Sequence record: LR756502.1
DNA: 64,000 nucleotides
Direction: 5' to 3' (one strand)
Shown piece by piece: positions 6,849-63,933 of the stretch; positions within the stretch are counted from its first letter, which is position 1; every line of letters begins with the position of its first letter. Both the position numbers and the translations under genes were made by a program. The notes beneath the pieces are model-generated. The model did not search any database. It had not been told where the DNA came from and saw only the letters and a program-made list of their open reading frames with translations.

Positions 6849-7310
6849 ATGAGTGACTTGGAAATAAAAAACTTTATTTATAAAATAAAGGACTACAATA
6901 TACGCAATCATTGTTTTGATATATATATTTCTTATCAATGGAAATATGGAAGACCAGAAACTTATAAAGAGATATATAAAAGAGTAAATAGAATATCAAA
7001 AATAAAAAACATAATGTCAAAAGAAATAATACATGATGGGTCTCAACCATTAGATTGGAGTAAAATTGGACCTCAAGATAGGATAAAATTTATAATTCCA
7101 GTTGGTGGACTGTCTAAAAATAAATGGTGGCAGTTTTGGAAAAAGGATGATCTTAAGAAATCAGAAGATCAAATCTGTAAATTAATTTATGAGTATAAAG
7201 AAGAAGTTGATTGGGATAATAATACTGGTGAACTAACAATCAATAGAAAATTACCATATAATAAAGAATATTGGTTTCCTGATAATAATAGTCATAAACT
7301 ATACGAATAA
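6849..7310 (+). CDS. protein carrying a gp20-like portal fragment plus RxxKI motif
   Basis: GPQDRIKFIIPVGGLSK..K...YKEEVDWDNNTGE...KEYWFP aligns by eye to the T4-like portal segment APERRIFYIDVGNLPK.K...YRNKLVYDA.TGE...EDFWLP; 153 aa. Confidence 0.65.
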   Translation: MSDLEIKNFIYKIKDYNIRNHCFDIYISYQWKYGRPETYKEIYKRVNRISKIKNIMSKEIIHDGSQPLDWSKIGPQDRIKFIIPVGGLSKNKWWQFWKKDDLKKSEDQICKLIYEYKEEVDWDNNTGELTINRKLPYNKEYWFPDNNSHKLYE

Positions 7311-9151: not shown

Positions 9152-10894
9152 ATGATAATATGTGAAATAGGAATTCGAGGATATAAGTCGTTTGGTAACA
9201 ATGAGCAGGTCTTAAATCTCAAGACTGATAAAGGTGAATTATTACTCTTGGTTGGTAATAATGGGAATGGTAAGTCATCTCTCTTGGAGTCATTTGAGTA
9301 TTGTTTATATGGTAAAGTTAAATCAGGTAAAGCTAAAAAATGGAATAAACTATCATCATTACCAAATAGGATAAATGGTGAATTGCAGAATAGAATTAAG
9401 TTTATTTCAAATGGTGTAGAGATTGAGGTAAAAAGGGGTATATCTCCTAGTATTCTTGAGTTATGGGAGAATGGCATTTTAAATGAGAGAGCTGGTAAAG
9501 CTAATCTTGATGAGAAGATAGAGAAGTATATAGGATTGGATGTTGAGACATTTAAATCATTTATATCTTTAAGTGTGAATGACTTTAAAAACTTTATATC
9601 TCTATCAAATGAAGAAAAACAATTACTTCTTGATAAGTTATTTAACCTTGAGGTTATTAACATATTAAACAATATTCTAAAGGATATCAATAAGAATAAT
9701 AAAATAAGAATGGCTTCCTTGGATTCAGAAATTAGAACACTAGATGAGTCTGTTGATTCTATTAAGAGGTCTATTCAGAAGGCTATTGAAAGAGAGAAGG
9801 AAGAAGCTAAAATTCTACTTGAAAGAGAGAAGGTTGATATTCAACTTGAAATTGATAAACTTACCGAAGAGATGAACTCTAAGAAAGATGATTATAAATC
9901 ATTGAAGGAGAAAATTGATAAGATAAAGGAGAAGGAGAATGAATTAAATGAAGAAATTGATAAGGAGAAGAAACAGTATATAAATACTCAAAACGATATC
10001 AAAAACGTTCAGAAAGAGATTGACTTATATGATTCTGGTAAATGCCCAACTTGTAAAACAGATTTTACTGAATCAGAACACTTTTCAAATTTAAGAAGCG
10101 CTTTGGTTGAGAAAAAAGTCGGGTTTGAATCTATCAAAGTAGAGATAGAAGAAAACATTAGACTAGTTAAAGAAAAACAAGTTAAGTTGAAATCAATATC
10201 TGATAAAACTACAACTTCTTTTAATGATCTAAACTTTCTTCTTAGAAACTATAAGTCTCAAATAGATAAACTAGTTCAAAAGAAATCAGATGAGTCTACT
10301 CCTCTTGTCACAAAACCATCTATTAATATTCAAGAGTTTCAAAATACAATTGATGAACTTACTCAAAAGAGATCTATTGGTTTTGATAACTCTACTATCT
10401 GTAAAGAGAAGGAAATGTTTTATAAGGAGTTGAATAAGATATTTGGTGAAGATGGTGTTAAGAAATCGATAATATCTGGTATTATTAAGCCAATTAATCA
10501 TTTTATTGCCGAGAATACTAAGAAGATGGGTCTACCATTTGATGTTAGATTGGATGAGACATTTACTGCTGAGATAAGACAACTCGGTTCAATAATAGAA
10601 CATGATTCACTATCAACAGGTGAGACTAAGAAGGTAAATATTGCTATATTAATAGCTTATTTAAAGTTAATACGAACTAAGAAGCATATAAATATTCTAT
10701 TTTTGGATGAGGTATTCTCTTCAATAGATATTGAGGGCATTGATTCAATATTGGCTTTGTTGAAGTCATTTGCTAATGATTATAATATAAATATACTTGT
10801 AGTTCATCATGCTATTCTAAATCAGGAAATGTTCGATAGGATATTGAAGATAAACAAAGAGATATTCTCTTCAATAGAAGAGATAGTATATTAA
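9152..10894 (+). CDS. sbcC: gp46/SbcC/Rad50-like recombination ATPase
   Basis: Walker A GNNGNGKSS, coiled coils, CPTC zinc hook, LSTGE signature, LFLDE Walker B, H-loop. Confidence 0.92.
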   Translation: MIICEIGIRGYKSFGNNEQVLNLKTDKGELLLLVGNNGNGKSSLLESFEYCLYGKVKSGKAKKWNKLSSLPNRINGELQNRIKFISNGVEIEVKRGISPSILELWENGILNERAGKANLDEKIEKYIGLDVETFKSFISLSVNDFKNFISLSNEEKQLLLDKLFNLEVINILNNILKDINKNNKIRMASLDSEIRTLDESVDSIKRSIQKAIEREKEEAKILLEREKVDIQLEIDKLTEEMNSKKDDYKSLKEKIDKIKEKENELNEEIDKEKKQYINTQNDIKNVQKEIDLYDSGKCPTCKTDFTESEHFSNLRSALVEKKVGFESIKVEIEENIRLVKEKQVKLKSISDKTTTSFNDLNFLLRNYKSQIDKLVQKKSDESTPLVTKPSINIQEFQNTIDELTQKRSIGFDNSTICKEKEMFYKELNKIFGEDGVKKSIISGIIKPINHFIAENTKKMGLPFDVRLDETFTAEIRQLGSIIEHDSLSTGETKKVNIAILIAYLKLIRTKKHINILFLDEVFSSIDIEGIDSILALLKSFANDYNINILVVHHAILNQEMFDRILKINKEIFSSIEEIVY

Positions 10895-33801: not shown

Positions 33802-35697
33802 ATGAATAACATTTCAGAGTTTTTATCCTCCTATTGGTGGATTGGTGCTGTCGCAATGGCACTAGTACTTTACAAAGTAATTTTGCGAGTATTTTTTGGA
33901 CTAGTAATTGTTCCTGAGGACAAGATTGGTTTAGTAACAAAGAAGTTCGTGCTTTTTGGAGCAAATAAAGAACTTGGTGGTGGTCGTATCATCGCTACAA
34001 ATGGAGAAGCTGGTTTACAGGCTAAGACTCTTGGTGCTGGATTACACTGGGGTATGTGGGTTTGGCAAATTAGTGTGGATATGCAAGACTTCCTTGTTAT
34101 TCCTGAAGGACACATCGGACTTATCTCATCTAAGGATGGTTCGGTTCCTAAAACTGGTCGTATCTTGGGTCGTACAGTTGATTGTGAGAACTTTCAAGAT
34201 GCTGAGGCATTCTTAAAAAATGGAGGACAGAAAGGTCGTCAATCTTCCTTTATTCCAAATGGTGTTTATAAAATCAATACACATCTATTCGAAGTATCTA
34301 CTGTACCACAAGCTGTTATTCAAGAGAGTATGGTTGGTATTGTAACAACACTTGATGGTGAACCATTAGAGGTTGGACAAATTGCTGGTAAGAATGTTGA
34401 AGGACACAACAACTTCCAAGATTTTGATAAATTCCTTGAAGAAGGTGGTAATCGTGGATTACAACAACAAACAGTTCTTGCTGGTACTTATAACCTAAAC
34501 CCTTGGGCTGTTAGTGTAGAAGAGGTTCAAATGACTGAAATTCAAATTGGACACGTTGGTGTTATAATCTCCTTCGTAGGTGATGAGGGAGTTGATGTAA
34601 CAGGTGCTGGATTCAAACATGGTAACCTTGTTAGTAAAGGTCAAAAGGGTGTTTTGGCTGAACCATTAAACCCTGGTAAGTATGCAATCAATAAATACAC
34701 TACACGTGTAGAGATTGTTCCTACTACAAACTTAGTTCTTAACTGGGCAACTGCTCGTACAGAGTCACATAACCTTGATGCTAAGTTAAGTACAATTACC
34801 GTTCGTTCTAAAGATGGTTTCCCTTTCAACCTAGATGTCTCTCAAATCATTCACATACCAATGACTGAGGCACCTAAAGTAATTGCTAGATTCGGTAATA
34901 TGAATAACCTTGTTTCTCAGGTACTTGAGCCTACAATTGGTAACTATTTCCGTAACTCGGCTCAAGATTCTGATGTTATTGCTTTCTTAACAACACGTAA
35001 AGAACGTCAAATTTCAGCTAAAGAACATATCTCAGCTGTATTAGAAGAGTATAACGTTCATGCTGTTGATACTCTAATTGGTGATATTACACCTCCAGAG
35101 TCATTGATGAAGACACTTACTGATCGTAAAATTGCACAAGAACAAGAGGTAACTTTTGAGACACAAAAGAAAGCAGCTATCTCTCGTCAAGCATATGAGA
35201 AAGAAACTGCAGTTGCTGATATGCAAGCTGAGGTTGTTAAAGCTGACCAAGGAGTTCAAATCTCTGAAAGACACGCTGATGCGGCCGTTAAGAAAGCTAC
35301 AGGTGATGCTCGTTCAGTAAAAATTGAAGCTGAGGCAGCAGCAGAGTCAACTAAGTTAAGAGCTGAGGCAGATGCTACTAAAATAAATGTTGTTGGTAGA
35401 GCTGAGGCTGGTGTTGTCCTTGCAAAAGGAGAGGCTGATGCACAATCATATAAATTAGCTGTTGAAGCGATGGGTCCAGAAAACTTTACTACAATGAAGA
35501 CAATGGAACAAATTGGTAAGAATGGTGTGAAGATTATGCCTGATTTACTTATTAATGGTGGAGGGGCTGATAGTGGTCCTATCAGTGGTCTATTGGGACT
35601 TAAACTTCTTGGTATGATGGAAGATAAGGTTGGTGGTTTATCCAAATCCAAGGACGTGAAAGATATCCCGGTTGTGGATGTTACTAAGAAGAAGTAA
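33802..35697 (+). CDS. SPFH/band-7 flotillin-like membrane protein
   Basis: N-terminal TM helix, VRSKDGFPFNLDVS SPFH core, Ala/Glu-rich coiled coil AEAAAE..KLRAEADA. Confidence 0.88.
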   Translation: MNNISEFLSSYWWIGAVAMALVLYKVILRVFFGLVIVPEDKIGLVTKKFVLFGANKELGGGRIIATNGEAGLQAKTLGAGLHWGMWVWQISVDMQDFLVIPEGHIGLISSKDGSVPKTGRILGRTVDCENFQDAEAFLKNGGQKGRQSSFIPNGVYKINTHLFEVSTVPQAVIQESMVGIVTTLDGEPLEVGQIAGKNVEGHNNFQDFDKFLEEGGNRGLQQQTVLAGTYNLNPWAVSVEEVQMTEIQIGHVGVIISFVGDEGVDVTGAGFKHGNLVSKGQKGVLAEPLNPGKYAINKYTTRVEIVPTTNLVLNWATARTESHNLDAKLSTITVRSKDGFPFNLDVSQIIHIPMTEAPKVIARFGNMNNLVSQVLEPTIGNYFRNSAQDSDVIAFLTTRKERQISAKEHISAVLEEYNVHAVDTLIGDITPPESLMKTLTDRKIAQEQEVTFETQKKAAISRQAYEKETAVADMQAEVVKADQGVQISERHADAAVKKATGDARSVKIEAEAAAESTKLRAEADATKINVVGRAEAGVVLAKGEADAQSYKLAVEAMGPENFTTMKTMEQIGKNGVKIMPDLLINGGGADSGPISGLLGLKLLGMMEDKVGGLSKSKDVKDIPVVDVTKKK

Positions 35698-48288: not shown

Positions 48289-50151
48289 ATGATAGAAAAA
48301 TTACGCGAAAAAATTATAGAAGCAAATAGGGCATATCGATTAGGTAGTCCTGTTATATCAGATGCAAGATATGACCAACTTGTTGATGAATTATCGTTAT
48401 TGGAGCCAGATGATGAATTGTTGGATGTTGTTGGTGTGTCTGTCATTGATGATACTCGTAAGAGTAAATTGCCAATAGAAATGGCATCAATGAATAAGAT
48501 TAAAACAATGGAGGACATTAACGACTGGGTTAGACTTAAAGGGATAAGTCGTAATGAACTAGTTGTAATGACTCCTAAGTTTGATGGATTATCTCTTTGT
48601 GTTAAAGAAGATGATAATGAAGCTTGGACTCGTGGTGATGGAACATTTGGTCAAAAATCAGATGAACACTACAAGTTAATTCAAAACCACTTATACGAAG
48701 ATATCTTCGAAAATGGAGATCCGTTCGGACCCATTGAATTCAAATATACATACGGTGAAGTTATGATGTCTAAGAAGTCTTTCTTAGATAAATATGCCGC
48801 TGATTTTGCTAACCCAAGAAATTTAGTAGCTGGTCTTATTAATAATAAAGAATCTACAAATCCATTATCAGATTGTCATTATATTAAATACGGTGGAATA
48901 CCTTCAAATGTATTCAATCCAAAAACAAAACAAGAAATACTTGACACTCTTAACAATGGTCAGAGAAGTAAAGTAAATTATCATATATGTAAAATATCCG
49001 AATTAACAGAAGAACTACTAGTTGGTTTATTCCATAAATGGTCTGTTGATTTTGAGATTGATGGTGTTATTATTGAAATTAATGACCTATCTAAACAAGA
49101 TTCCCTTGGACGTGAGCGTTCAAGTAATAACCCAGTTTGGGCTCGCGCCTTCAAACACGCTAGCTTTGAACAATGTGCCGAGACAGAAGTTATTGGTATA
49201 TCTTGGAATATATCTAAACAAGGCTTATTAAAGCCAATCCTACATATTAAACCTGTTAAACTTGATGGAGTTACCGTTTCTAATGTTACTGGAAACAATG
49301 CTAGATTCGTAAAAGACTCTGGTCTTGGTATTGGCGCTATTGTTGTTGTTAAGCGTTCTGGTATGGTTATACCACTTATCTGTGATGTCCTAAAAAGTGT
49401 TGACTTTATTCAGCCTGTAATCGAAGGTGTTGAAATTGATTGGAATGAAAACGGTATTGAGTTAATTACTCTTACTGAGACAGATGATCAAAAACTAAAG
49501 CAAATCATATCATTCTTTGAAATACTTGAAGCAGATAATGTTGGTGAAGGAGTTATTACCCAACTATGGGAAGCTGGTCATAGAACAATAAAAGACATAC
49601 TAAATCTTAAGCCATCTGATATGGAAAAGTTAGATAGATTTGGTAAGAGAAAGTCCACTATTGTTTATAACTCAATTCAAGGTTCGGTTAAAGATGTTAG
49701 TTTATCTAAACTACAACATGCTACTGGTATATTTCGCGGGTTAGGAAGTAAAAAACTTATTTTACTTGAACACTTTACATCAAAGCCAAGCATTAATCAA
49801 GTAATGTCTATTGATGGGTTTGCTGAAACTTCAGCAAATACTTATTTAGATAGTTATGATGTATTTTTTGACTTCATAAAAGATTTACCCGTTAGTATAG
49901 AAGAGAAAGTTGAGACAGTTGCTACTGGATCAGATTTAGAGGGCCAATCATTTGTATTTACTGGTGTTCGTAGAGGTGATCTAGAGGAGGTAATTGAATC
50001 TAGAGGAGGTAAGATTGGGTCAGGTGTTTCTAAAAACACAACCTATCTTGTTATGAAGTCTATCGGTAGTGGATCTTCTAAAGAGAAGAAAGCAGTTGAA
50101 GTTGGTGCTAAGATTATTACGGTTGAACAATTAGAAAATATATTGAAATAA
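48289..50151 (+). CDS. ligA: NAD-dependent DNA ligase
   Basis: KFDG adenylation motif, TRGDG, NPRNLVAG, DGVII, HhH motifs, C-terminal BRCT. Confidence 0.95.
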   Translation: MIEKLREKIIEANRAYRLGSPVISDARYDQLVDELSLLEPDDELLDVVGVSVIDDTRKSKLPIEMASMNKIKTMEDINDWVRLKGISRNELVVMTPKFDGLSLCVKEDDNEAWTRGDGTFGQKSDEHYKLIQNHLYEDIFENGDPFGPIEFKYTYGEVMMSKKSFLDKYAADFANPRNLVAGLINNKESTNPLSDCHYIKYGGIPSNVFNPKTKQEILDTLNNGQRSKVNYHICKISELTEELLVGLFHKWSVDFEIDGVIIEINDLSKQDSLGRERSSNNPVWARAFKHASFEQCAETEVIGISWNISKQGLLKPILHIKPVKLDGVTVSNVTGNNARFVKDSGLGIGAIVVVKRSGMVIPLICDVLKSVDFIQPVIEGVEIDWNENGIELITLTETDDQKLKQIISFFEILEADNVGEGVITQLWEAGHRTIKDILNLKPSDMEKLDRFGKRKSTIVYNSIQGSVKDVSLSKLQHATGIFRGLGSKKLILLEHFTSKPSINQVMSIDGFAETSANTYLDSYDVFFDFIKDLPVSIEEKVETVATGSDLEGQSFVFTGVRRGDLEEVIESRGGKIGSGVSKNTTYLVMKSIGSGSSKEKKAVEVGAKIITVEQLENILK

Positions 50152-62929: not shown

Positions 62930-63016
62930 ATGAGAACAATTAACAAACATAAACATTTTAGTAAATTGAATAAGTGGTTTAGTAACCATCGATTCGAAGC
63001 TAAAGCGTTTTGCTAA
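62930..63016 (+). CDS. 28-aa candidate leader peptide of the tRNA cluster
   Basis: Hand translation MRTINKHKHFSKLNKWFSNHRFEAKAFC*. Confidence 0.5.
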   Translation: MRTINKHKHFSKLNKWFSNHRFEAKAFC

Positions 63017-63050
63017 ATTGTTAATAAACATAAAGGCATAAACTTACTTG

Positions 63051-63087
63051 AACTCTCGAATTGAAAAATTCGAGAGTTTTTTATTTT
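63051..63087 (+). terminator. intrinsic terminator/attenuator upstream of the tRNAs
   Basis: 12-bp stem AACTCTCGAATT-GAAA-AATTCGAGAGTT followed by TTTTATTTT. Confidence 0.85.
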
Positions 63088-63096
63088 AAATTATAT

Positions 63097-63168
63097 GGTG
63101 GTTATCGTCCAAAGGAAGGATGTGTCCCTGTGAAGGACAAGATGTGGTATCGAGATCCATTAACCACC
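63097..63168 (+). tRNA. tRNA-His (GTG)
   Basis: G-1, acceptor GTGGTTA/TAACCAC, anticodon arm TGTCC-CTGTGAA-GGACA, C73. Confidence 0.85.
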
Positions 63169-63173
63169 CAAAA

Positions 63174-63246
63174 GGATCCTAAGCTAACTTGGTAGAAGCG
63201 TATGCCTGAAGAGCATGAGGATTTGGTTCGAAACCAAAAGGATCCA
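63174..63246 (+). tRNA. tRNA-Phe (GAA)
   Basis: Acceptor GGATCCT/AGGATCC, TATGC-CTGAAGA-GCATG, T arm TTTGG-TTCGAAA-CCAAA. Confidence 0.9.
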
Positions 63247-63256
63247 CAAAAAATAT

Positions 63257-63333
63257 GGTGATTGTAGCTCAATTGGTAGAGCGCTTGACTGTGAGTCAAG
63301 AGGTAGTGGGATCGAATCCCACCTTTCACCCCA
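63257..63333 (+). tRNA. tRNA-His (GTG), second copy, CCA encoded
   Basis: CTTGA-CTGTGAG-TCAAG; acceptor GTGATTG/CTTTCAC has two T:T mismatches. Confidence 0.85.
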
Positions 63334-63335
63334 AT

Positions 63336-63407
63336 GGAGGATTAGCTGAGATGGTTTAGCGTCTGGTTGAAGACCAGAAGACCTCGGTTCGATTCCGGGA
63401 TTCTCCA
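63336..63407 (+). tRNA. tRNA-Phe (GAA), second copy
   Basis: GGAGGAT/ATTCTCC, TCTGG-TTGAAGA-CCAGA, TTCGATT T loop. Confidence 0.9.
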
Positions 63408-63416
63408 CAAAAATAT

Positions 63417-63495
63417 ACACTCGCTCATTGGCGTGACCAGTCGGTTCCCCGATAAAGCGTAAGCGTGGTTAAGAGTTCGAATCTCTTCGGGTGTT
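63417..63495 (+). tRNA. aberrant tRNA-like element (anticodon undetermined)
   Basis: Acceptor ACACTCG/CGGGTGT and T arm AAGAG-TTCGAAT-CTCTT are intact; anticodon arm GTCGG-TTCC-CCGAT has a 4-nt loop; long variable region. Confidence 0.55.
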
Positions 63496-63500
63496 CAAAT

Positions 63501-63571
63501 ACGTGATACTGGCAAGGTGTCGGTCAGGTCTCCAAAACCTCGATGGGTGGGTTCAATTCCTACATCACGTG
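63501..63571 (+). tRNA. tRNA-Trp (CCA)
   Basis: ACGTGAT/ATCACGT, AGGT-CTCCAAA-ACCT, GTGGG-TTCAATT-CCTAC. Confidence 0.85.
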
Positions 63572-63589: not shown

Positions 63590-63619
63590 ATGAAAACAAA
63601 ACGAAAATATAAAAGATAA
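63590..63619 (+). other. 9-codon Lys-rich micro-ORF (MKTKRKYKR*) followed by a hairpin
   Basis: AAA at every second codon; hairpin 63620-63645; directly before three tRNA-Lys genes. Confidence 0.35.
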
Positions 63620-63660
63620 CTGCTCACTGGATTTTCCATGGGCAGTATAATATAACACAA

Positions 63661-63746
63661 GTGTCCGTGAGTGAATGGTTGAAACTACCAGTCTTTTAAA
63701 CTGGCTACCGAAAGGTACAATGTGGGTTCGAATCCCACCGGGCACA
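63661..63746 (+). tRNA. tRNA-Lys (TTT) with a long variable arm and type-II-like body
   Basis: GTGTCCG/CGGGCAC, CCAGT-CTTTTAA-ACTGG, V arm TACC-GAAA-GGTA, A73. Confidence 0.85.
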
Positions 63747-63758
63747 CAAACATACAAT

Positions 63759-63847
63759 GTTTCTGTCGCTCAGCGGTCGAGAGCATCGGTCTTTTAAACC
63801 GAAGGATTTATATCCCATCGTGAGTTCAAATCTCACCAGGAACACCA
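63759..63847 (+). tRNA. tRNA-Lys (TTT) with a long variable arm, CCA encoded
   Basis: GTTTCTG/CAGGAAC, TCGGT-CTTTTAA-ACCGA, V arm GGAT-TTAT-ATCC. Confidence 0.88.
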
Positions 63848-63848
63848 A

Positions 63849-63929
63849 GGATCTGTCGCTTAGCGGCTATAGCAACTGGCTCTTAACCAGTCGAGAAATC
63901 AACCGTGGGTTCGAGTCCCACCAGATCCA
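63849..63929 (+). tRNA. tRNA-Lys (CTT) with an extended variable region
   Basis: GGATCTG/CAGATCC, ACTGG-CTCTTAA-CCAGT, 13-nt variable region CGAGAAATCAACC. Confidence 0.88.
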
Positions 63930-63933
63930 CAAA

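Follow-up and report, generated by a model that had tools for sequence, protein, structure and literature searches.

Lysine tRNAs are expected to carry a short variable loop, yet the only three tRNA-Lys genes of a 642-kb freshwater phage all carry an extra hairpin arm at this position. Are these arms real, are they peculiar to this phage, and do the tRNAs that bear them still decode lysine? The genes lie near the end of a 64,000-nt stretch (hereafter, the window) comprising bases 310001-374000 of LR756502.1, an unannotated 642,428-bp record of an uncultured phage. This phage has been placed among the largest megaphages; it comes from a French freshwater lake, and its nearest relative, LR745206.1, comes from the Japanese subsurface (PMC9723777). 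An earlier note, made from the sequence alone, had described the long arms and proposed that they were gained three times independently, most simply to evade nucleases that attack tRNA-Lys, or alternatively that the first copy is leucylated and recodes AAA. The observation made in that note is confirmed here. Its interpretation is only partly supported: the anatomy and the inference of selection hold, whereas neither the three independent gains nor the Leu alternative is supported, and nuclease evasion remains a plausible inference.

The features of the region are as follows, in the numbering of the window:

62930-63016 (+), leader mini-ORF (leader L1) encoding MRTINKHKHFSKLNKWFSNHRFEAKAFC, rich in His, Phe, Trp and Lys codons, upstream of the His/Phe/His/Phe/Trp tRNA run
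63051-63083 (+), terminator-like hairpin with a T run, between leader L1 and the first tRNA
63098-63571 (+), upstream tRNA run: a His-like tRNA at 63098-63168 (detected by Rfam only), Phe at 63174-63247, His at 63258-63333, Phe at 63336-63408, a tRNA-like stretch of no assigned type at about 63418-63495, and a Trp-like (CCA) tRNA at 63500-63571
63590-63619 (+), leader mini-ORF ATG AAA ACA AAA CGA AAA TAT AAA AGA TAA (MKTKRKYKR)
63620-63645 (+), hairpin starting directly after the stop codon of this leader
63646-63651, TATAAT hexamer
63661-63746 (+), tRNA-Lys(UUU), copy 1; variable region at 63705-63721
63759-63847 (+), tRNA-Lys(UUU), copy 2; variable region at 63803-63819, encoded CCA at 63845-63847
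63849-63929 (+), tRNA-Lys(CUU), copy 3; variable region at 63892-63904

Architecture of the three tRNA-Lys genes

ARAGORN identified tRNA-Lys genes at 63661-63747 (UUU), 63759-63847 (UUU) and 63849-63930 (CUU). The Rfam tRNA model (RF00005) scored them at 59.5, 62.9 and 59.6 bits, respectively, against a gathering score of 29, and placed the extra bases as an insertion in the variable region. A cloverleaf parse gave variable regions of 17 nt (CTACCGAAAGGTACAAT), 17 nt (AGGATTTATATCCCATC) and 13 nt (CGAGAAATCAACC), in exact agreement with the earlier note. Each consists of one unpaired base, a hairpin and a four-base tail, namely C, TACC-GAAA-GGTA and CAAT in copy 1; A, GGAT-TTAT-ATCC and CATC in copy 2; and C, GA-GAAA-TC and AACC in copy 3. 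Unconstrained minimum-energy folding returned the cloverleaf with these hairpins for all three. The acceptor/T arms are 7/5 with all 12 pairs formed, the anticodon loops are CTTTTAA, CTTTTAA and CTCTTAA, with U33 and A37, and the discriminator is A73 in every copy. Copy 1 has a 3-bp D stem (AGT/ACT with a G13/A22 mismatch) and A15 with U48, whereas copy 2 has a 4-bp D stem and copies 2 and 3 have G15:C48. The stem of copy 3 is only 2 bp; its closest relatives have stems of 3-4 bp, and some of them carry a UUU anticodon. The whole record, scanned in 15 overlapping pieces, holds 46 ARAGORN tRNAs, of which only these three are tRNA-Lys, so that every tRNA-Lys gene of the phage is of the long-arm kind.

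Distribution and conservation of the arm

A survey of long-arm tRNA-Lys in phage genomes, one of the checks suggested in the earlier note, showed that these genes are not a local oddity. IMG/VR was scanned for a UUU anticodon loop followed, at long-arm spacing, by a common T arm. The scan returned at least 118 stretches, and at least 100 loci, counted over these stretches plus the loci L002 and L003, hold an ARAGORN tRNA-Lys of 81 nt or more, often inside tRNA arrays on contigs of up to 618 kb. In a second scan allowing both short and long spacing, 8 of 115 stretches were long, or about 7% of viral tRNA-Lys(UUU) pattern hits (95% CI 3-13%). Of the 100 loci with a long tRNA-Lys, 58 also hold a short one; thus, the long form is not simply a replacement. 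Among cultured viruses, the unrelated Caulobacter phage CcrRogue has two annotated tRNA-Lys genes of 87 and 90 nt with the same layout, on which the phiCbK genome paper does not remark. Six Caulobacter phage records matched, of which only CcrRogue was inspected, and no other cultured carriers were identified: BLAST of two other long-Lys sub-families against cultured phages found nothing at E <= 1e-8. In 185,579 cellular species genomes, the same pattern gave mostly chance hits, but 19 of 120 stretches hold real long tRNA-Lys genes. Eleven or twelve of these lie in phage-like tRNA arrays, while five Actinomycetota MAGs (Frankiales and Mycobacteriales, 69-73% GC) share a nearly identical lone tRNA-Lys(UUU) gene among ordinary chromosomal genes, with no integrase nearby.

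To determine whether the arm is under selection, sequences were chosen by arm length alone. In 23 distinct tRNA-Lys with a 15-nt variable region, the three stem positions pair in 98.6% of cells, and in 15 sequences with a 17-nt variable region, a group that includes copies 1 and 2, the four stem positions pair in 81.7% of cells. Every stem pair in both groups shows changes on both sides, whereas controls in which partners were slid by 1-3 columns pair in only 31-48% of cells. The stem of copy 1, for example, reads TACC/GGTA in this phage, GAGA/TCTC in L002 and L109, and TCC/GGA in L093, these three being loci from related huge phages. The arms are thus under selection, as shown by compensatory change. 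The core is remodelled together with the arm, as U8-A9 occurs in 84 of 107 short forms but in only 24 of 92 long forms. In addition, the 15:48 tertiary pair covaries across the family, with AG.. D loops accompanying C48 and AA.. D loops accompanying U48, in support of these being real tRNAs.

Long variable arms are limited by textbooks to Leu, Ser, bacterial Tyr and Sec tRNAs, the class II tRNAs, and a conserved, widespread tRNA-Lys with such an arm breaks this rule for one of the best-studied isoacceptors. As in class II tRNAs, the variable region exceeds 10 nt and forms a conserved stem-loop, and copy 1 has a 3-bp D stem with an unpaired 13:22; like class II tRNAs, these molecules would have to be accepted by the ribosome and EF-Tu. 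The stems are short, however, at 2-5 bp, and the layout is distinct. Among 102 distinct long tRNA-Lys, the commonest number of unpaired bases is 1 on the 5' side (59 cases) and 4 (43 cases) or 3 (21 cases) on the 3' side, whereas phage Leu has 0 and 1-2, Ser has 1 and 1, and Tyr, the nearest, has 0-1 and 3. Allo-tRNAs likewise carry long variable arms on tRNAs whose anticodons are not Leu, Ser or Tyr, and occur in both bacteria and phages, but they have 8/4 or 9/3 acceptor/T arms and behave as Ser or Ala acceptors, and Lys anticodons were seen only once in that study (Mukai et al., PMC5389517). The 7/5 arms of the present tRNAs do not fit this group, and the present tRNAs carry Lys-type features. 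No description of long-arm tRNA-Lys, or of leader-controlled phage tRNA genes, was found in literature searches, although most subscription journals lay outside their reach and a prior description cannot be excluded. Annotation and tRNA-seq pipelines should expect these forms.

Long arms are not confined to lysine tRNAs. In the loci that carry long tRNA-Lys, long-arm versions were found for Ile(UAU) (11 of 20), Thr(UGU) (8 of 36), Cys (7 of 26), Trp (8 of 42), Met(CAU) (7 of 54) and Asn (5 of 47), but not for Asp(GUC) (0 of 44), Pro(UGG) (0 of 44) or Gly(GCC) (0 of 29); long arms also occur in Glu and Gln tRNAs of phages. Any explanation specific to lysine is therefore incomplete. The discriminators of the long versions fit their anticodons (Trp G73 in 10 of 10, Cys U73 in 7 of 7, Asn G73 in 8 of 9), which argues that the arm does not redirect charging. 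The present genome itself holds long and short pairs for Glu(UUC), Thr(UGU) and Gln(UUG) and, conversely, short tRNA-Leu next to long ones.

Amino acid identity

The earlier note had regarded A73 and A15:U48 as bacterial LeuRS determinants, but that these features mark Leu identity here is not supported. A73 is the discriminator of 101 of 107 ordinary short phage tRNA-Lys(UUU), and A15:U48 is replaced by G15:C48 in two of the three copy-1 orthologues examined (L109 and L093). Among long Lys(UUU), the anticodon loop is CUUUUAA in 91 of 92 and A73 occurs in 71 of 92, although 19 of the 92 have U73, a base of uncertain meaning for LysRS. Copy 1 is nevertheless unusually Leu-like for a non-Leu tRNA. 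It shares U8-G9, a 3-bp D stem with G13, A14-A15, U48 and A73 with the long tRNA-Leu genes of this phage, and it scores above 97% of non-Leu tRNAs on a long-Leu profile, but this places it only at the 7th percentile of true long Leu. On the short-Lys profile with the anticodon masked, copy 3 lies at the 84th percentile of true members and copies 1 and 2 at the 34th-36th, copy 1 being at the 34th, with a classifier that is only 77% accurate. Bacterial tRNA-Ser usually carries G73, and the Ser arms measured here have about 5 bp or more with a 1/1 layout; the three copies, with A73, stems of 2-4 bp and a 1/4 layout, do not conform to this type.

The meaning of AAA was examined in the NAD-dependent ligase of the phage, aligned to five cultured-phage ligases. 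AAA codons align with K at 0.28, R at 0.10 and LIVM at 0.14, and AAG codons with K at 0.37 and LIVM at 0.08, whereas Leu codons align with LIVM at 0.58-0.63 and K at 0.02-0.07. AAA thus behaves as Lys in this protein and recoding to Leu is not supported, although low-level ambiguity cannot be excluded. AAA is also a very common codon here, at 39 per 1000. A P-loop motif test of the same question gave counts too low, with a motif too loose, to be of use, and the catalytic Lys of the ligase and the Walker A Lys of the SbcC-like protein both use AAG and say nothing about AAA. The phage has no class II LysRS by tblastn, the only hit being a non-discriminating AspRS.

Origin of the array

Each of the three copies has a long-arm orthologue in related huge phages (L002, L012, L109 and L093), with body identity of 0.85-0.95. 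The orthologues of copy 1 are L002 7017-7103, L109 3516-3602 and L093 5804-5888; that of copy 2 is L109 3412-3502 (0.88); and those of copy 3 are L012 12587-12674 (0.95) and L002 7107-7190 (0.94). The arrays keep the same order and are headed by an ordinary 74-nt gene that this phage lacks, and the sister phage has four tRNA-Lys in the same place, an ordinary 74-nt gene followed by three long ones. The arms therefore predate this phage and, given their shared layout, fit inheritance plus duplication. No related phage whose array holds short-arm orthologues of these same three genes was seen. That the arms arose three times in this phage is accordingly very unlikely, even though the three bodies differ: by profile, copy 3 is clearly Lys-like, whereas copies 1 and 2 are ambiguous between Arg and Lys. 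Nearest-neighbour identity could not assign body origins, because differences of 0.68-0.77 are within noise, and was replaced by profile scoring. Across phages at large the bodies are heterogeneous (32 Lys-like, 31 Cys-like and 14 Tyr-like by the 77% accurate classifier), such that several origins in phages at large remain possible.

Possible roles of the long-arm tRNAs

The three genes are best read as working elongator tRNAs that accept lysine and belong to a widespread class of phage tRNA-Lys with a class-II-like build. That they are functional lysine tRNAs is likely. In this view, the phage inherited the array from the ancestor it shares with related huge phages and lost the ordinary 74-nt gene that heads the array in those relatives, so that every tRNA-Lys it brings into the cell would be the long-arm kind, reading AAA and AAG as lysine. 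LysRS recognition through the anticodon and A73 is expected to be unaffected because the arm would project away from those elements. The most likely use of the arm would be to make the phage tRNA-Lys differ in shape from that of the host at the junction of the anticodon stem, variable loop and D stem, so that host factors aimed at tRNA-Lys, above all defence nucleases, would fail to act on it. What the analysis shows is the anatomy of the genes, their wide distribution, their orthologous arrays and the compensatory change in their arms; expression, charging by LysRS, nuclease resistance and coupling of the array to AAA decoding are all inferred. Nuclease evasion itself is possible but short of probable, being inferred without knowledge of the host or of any nuclease it may carry, and the explanation as a whole is tentative.

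A defence context is plausible, as tRNA-Lys(UUU) is a repeated target of nucleases. AriB of PARIS cuts between positions 40 and 41, and phage T5 tRNA-Lys(UUU) escapes it (PMC12409363), while a bacterial Schlafen cuts at 30/31 (PMC13056530); PrrC also cuts this tRNA, and phage tRNA-Lys rescues infection. The AriB and Schlafen sites both flank the place where the arm emerges. The T5 tRNA is, like those here, a phage-encoded tRNA-Lys that differs from that of the host, and the isoacceptor is the same, but it escapes through two base substitutions in the anticodon stem (39 and 41) and keeps a short variable loop, whereas here a whole arm is added. By sequence alone, copies 1 and 2 have A39 and copy 2 also has C41, but positions 39-41 do not differ in any obvious way between long and short phage tRNA-Lys. 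The arm offers a concrete structural candidate for how phages keep lysine decoding going when hosts attack tRNA-Lys.

Other roles for the arm can be envisaged, although each appears unlikely on present evidence. The arm may be a handle or self-mark for a phage-encoded partner, such as a modification or processing enzyme, or a factor that removes host tRNA-Lys while sparing that of the phage, rather than a shield against host nucleases. The coexistence of long and short versions of one isoacceptor in many phages, including the Glu, Thr and Gln pairs of this genome and its short and long Leu, resembles two deliberately different pools, and the arm loops are often GNRA tetraloops (GAAA in 25 of 102), which are common docking elements. 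However, no partner gene was identified, the stem sequence is free to vary with only the pairing kept, and the chromosomal copies in Actinomycetota have no phage partner. Somewhat less likely still, the arm may be a structural stabiliser that helps an A/U-rich tRNA-Lys, or other weak tRNAs, to fold or to last in a foreign cell lacking the host's usual modifications, with no conflict with defence systems involved. This would accord with the occurrence of the class in phages of many environments and in high-GC Actinomycetota chromosomes, and with the joint remodelling of position 9 and the D stem, but copy 3 keeps only a 2-bp stem, a sub-family has A-rich variable regions of 11-12 nt with little pairing, and the reading does not explain why Lys(UUU) is the main carrier.

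Charging of copy 1, or of the whole class, by LeuRS, SerRS or TyrRS through its class-II build, placing another amino acid at AAA, is very unlikely. The Leu-like features of copy 1 favour it, as does a UUU-anticodon tRNA with a typical Leu-type D arm in a Thalassovita isolate, but the codon alignment, the high frequency of AAA, the percentile rankings, the replacement of A15:U48 by G15:C48 in orthologues, the arm layout and, for Ser, the A73 of all three copies weigh against it. Mimicry of a codon or anticodon by the arm loop was also considered and was rejected for Lys, since GAAA and other GNRA loops occur equally in long Thr, Trp, Asn, Leu and Ser arms.

Leader frames upstream of tRNA clusters

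Directly upstream of the lysine array lies the 9-codon frame at 63590-63619, in which four of the nine sense codons are AAA. Its stop codon abuts the hairpin at 63620-63645 (-15.2 kcal/mol; z = -5.0 against shuffles), which is not followed by a U tract. The same peptide, with synonymous differences elsewhere, sits about 70 nt upstream of the first tRNA-Lys in L002, L012, L109 and L076; all 20 Lys codons in the five phages are AAA, and the orthologous leaders carry hairpins of different sequence at the same place. K-rich mini-ORFs precede 18 of 233 tRNA-Lys blocks, against 15 of 758 run starts of other isotypes (odds ratio 4.1, P = 9e-5), and their Lys codons are 69 AAA to 11 AAG, against 403 to 319 in the genes of the window.

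This arrangement recalls the leader-peptide attenuators of amino acid operons (his, trp, leu, thr and phe types), in which a short upstream frame enriched in the codons of one amino acid is followed by a hairpin, although the genes downstream are here tRNA genes rather than biosynthetic genes. It suggests, by inference, that the output of the array is tied to how well AAA is being decoded. The regulatory reading is weak on mechanism, because no antiterminator pairing was found for the two terminator-bearing leaders that were folded (Gln and L1) and the Lys leader hairpin lacks a U tract; the link is therefore statistical. If regulatory, such frames would be a new way of controlling tRNA genes. 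A more speculative and unlikely possibility, which the evidence leaves standing, is that array and leader together form a back-up that senses depletion: the leader would report how well host tRNA-Lys(UUU) is decoding, for example after a defence nuclease has cut it, and would then set the output of long-arm tRNA-Lys that the nuclease cannot recognise. More broadly, huge phages would control their tRNA clusters through leader frames written in the codons of the tRNAs downstream, a form of tRNA homeostasis that is not known to have been described for any cell or virus.

Over 880 tRNA runs, 15 have a leader enriched in cognate residues at P < 1e-3, whereas permuted assignments give 4.6 on average and at most 11 in 200 trials. 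Elsewhere in this genome, four tRNA-Gln genes follow a frame with seven Gln codons in a row plus a terminator, an Arg/Ser tRNA group follows a Ser/Arg-rich frame, and a frame with three ATA codons and several Gly codons precedes tRNA-Ile(UAU), with two tRNA-Gly(UCC) genes following 95 nt after it. The Gln, Arg/Ser, Ile/Gly and His/Phe leaders have a hairpin plus a T run. Within the window, the His/Phe/Trp run, whose Trp gene is called by ARAGORN in L002, follows leader L1 and its terminator, and a homologous leader (MRTINKHKHFSK..KWFSN..) precedes a Phe/His/Lys/Trp tRNA run in another locus, L144.

Leader reading frames upstream of tRNA runs

A conserved 9-codon frame, MK[T/S]K.KYKR, which contains four AAA codons and is followed at once by a hairpin, was observed about 40 nt before the tRNA-Lys array of the window (63590-63645). 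The frame also occurs in phage locus L002 (about 6860-6920) and in L012, L109 and L076, upstream of their first tRNA-Lys, and all 20 Lys codons in the five phages are AAA.

Short leader frames enriched in the codons of the tRNAs that follow them were found in the window (62930-63083) and, within LR756502.1, upstream of the tRNA runs that start at 375561, 389799, 422131 and 423053 (stretches L001 and L229 of the record). For example, seven Gln codons in a row precede four tRNA-Gln genes, and His/Phe/Trp codons precede a His/Phe/Trp run. Most of these frames are followed by a hairpin and a T run. Similar frames that start MRT.. occur in other huge-phage contigs (L030, L144, L112, L024 and L040).

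Variable arms of other isoacceptors

Long variable arms were also seen in tRNA-Ile(UAU) genes of 88-95 nt (loci L028, L032, L041, L044, L065, L074, L103, L131, L224, L226 and others), in which the 7-nt loop of the variable-arm hairpin reads CAGATTA or a close variant. AGAT is present in 15 of the 16 distinct UAU sequences listed. The loop contains GAU, the ordinary isoleucine anticodon, so it may mimic an anticodon loop for IleRS.

Within LR756502.1 itself, stretch L229 contains long-arm genes for three further isoacceptors, each alongside a short version of the same isoacceptor, as well as two short tRNA-Leu genes that sit next to long-arm tRNA-Leu genes:

389161-389246, long-arm tRNA-Glu(UUC)
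402558-402638, long-arm tRNA-Thr(UGU)
423131-423215, long-arm tRNA-Gln(UUG)
402643-402716, tRNA-Leu(UAG), 74 nt, with a 4-nt variable loop
402726-402801, tRNA-Leu(UAA), 76 nt, with a 4-nt variable loop

In the sampled phage loci, roughly two-fifths of tRNA-Leu are short.

Long-arm genes with a UUU anticodon in cellular genomes

Five high-GC Actinomycetota MAGs (Frankiales, Mycobacteriales) share a lone, nearly identical long-arm tRNA-Lys(UUU), located at L298 5179-5263, L306 2977-3061, L307 1157-1243, L358 877-961 and L363 2919-3003, where each handle denotes a stretch from one MAG. Its neighbours are ordinary genes (DSBA-like, alcohol-dehydrogenase-like), with no integrase. In addition, the genome of an isolate, Thalassovita litoralis DSM 29506 (L277 7824-7909), has a UUU-anticodon tRNA with a typical Leu-type D arm, a long arm and A73. 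This is the kind of Leu-bodied "tRNA-Lys" that the earlier note had in mind when it described one copy as having a tRNA-Leu-like body.

Other genes of the window and the phage record

Three tRNA-like stretches of the window are missed by ARAGORN:

63098-63168, a His-like tRNA (Rfam, 44.6 bits)
about 63418-63495, an unassigned tRNA-like stretch
63500-63571, a Trp-like (CCA) tRNA that Rfam matches only weakly, through the Sec model, and whose L002 counterpart is called tRNA-Trp

The phage also encodes an archaeal-type non-discriminating aspartyl-tRNA synthetase (NF003483, 469 bits) at L229 42564-43841 (LR756502.1 426363-427640), about 3 kb from the Pro/Asp/Gln tRNA clusters. The window encodes an NAD-dependent DNA ligase, an SbcC/Rad50-like ATPase and an SPFH/Band 7 protein (48289-50151, 9152-10894 and 33802-35697); most other large reading frames have no Pfam match.
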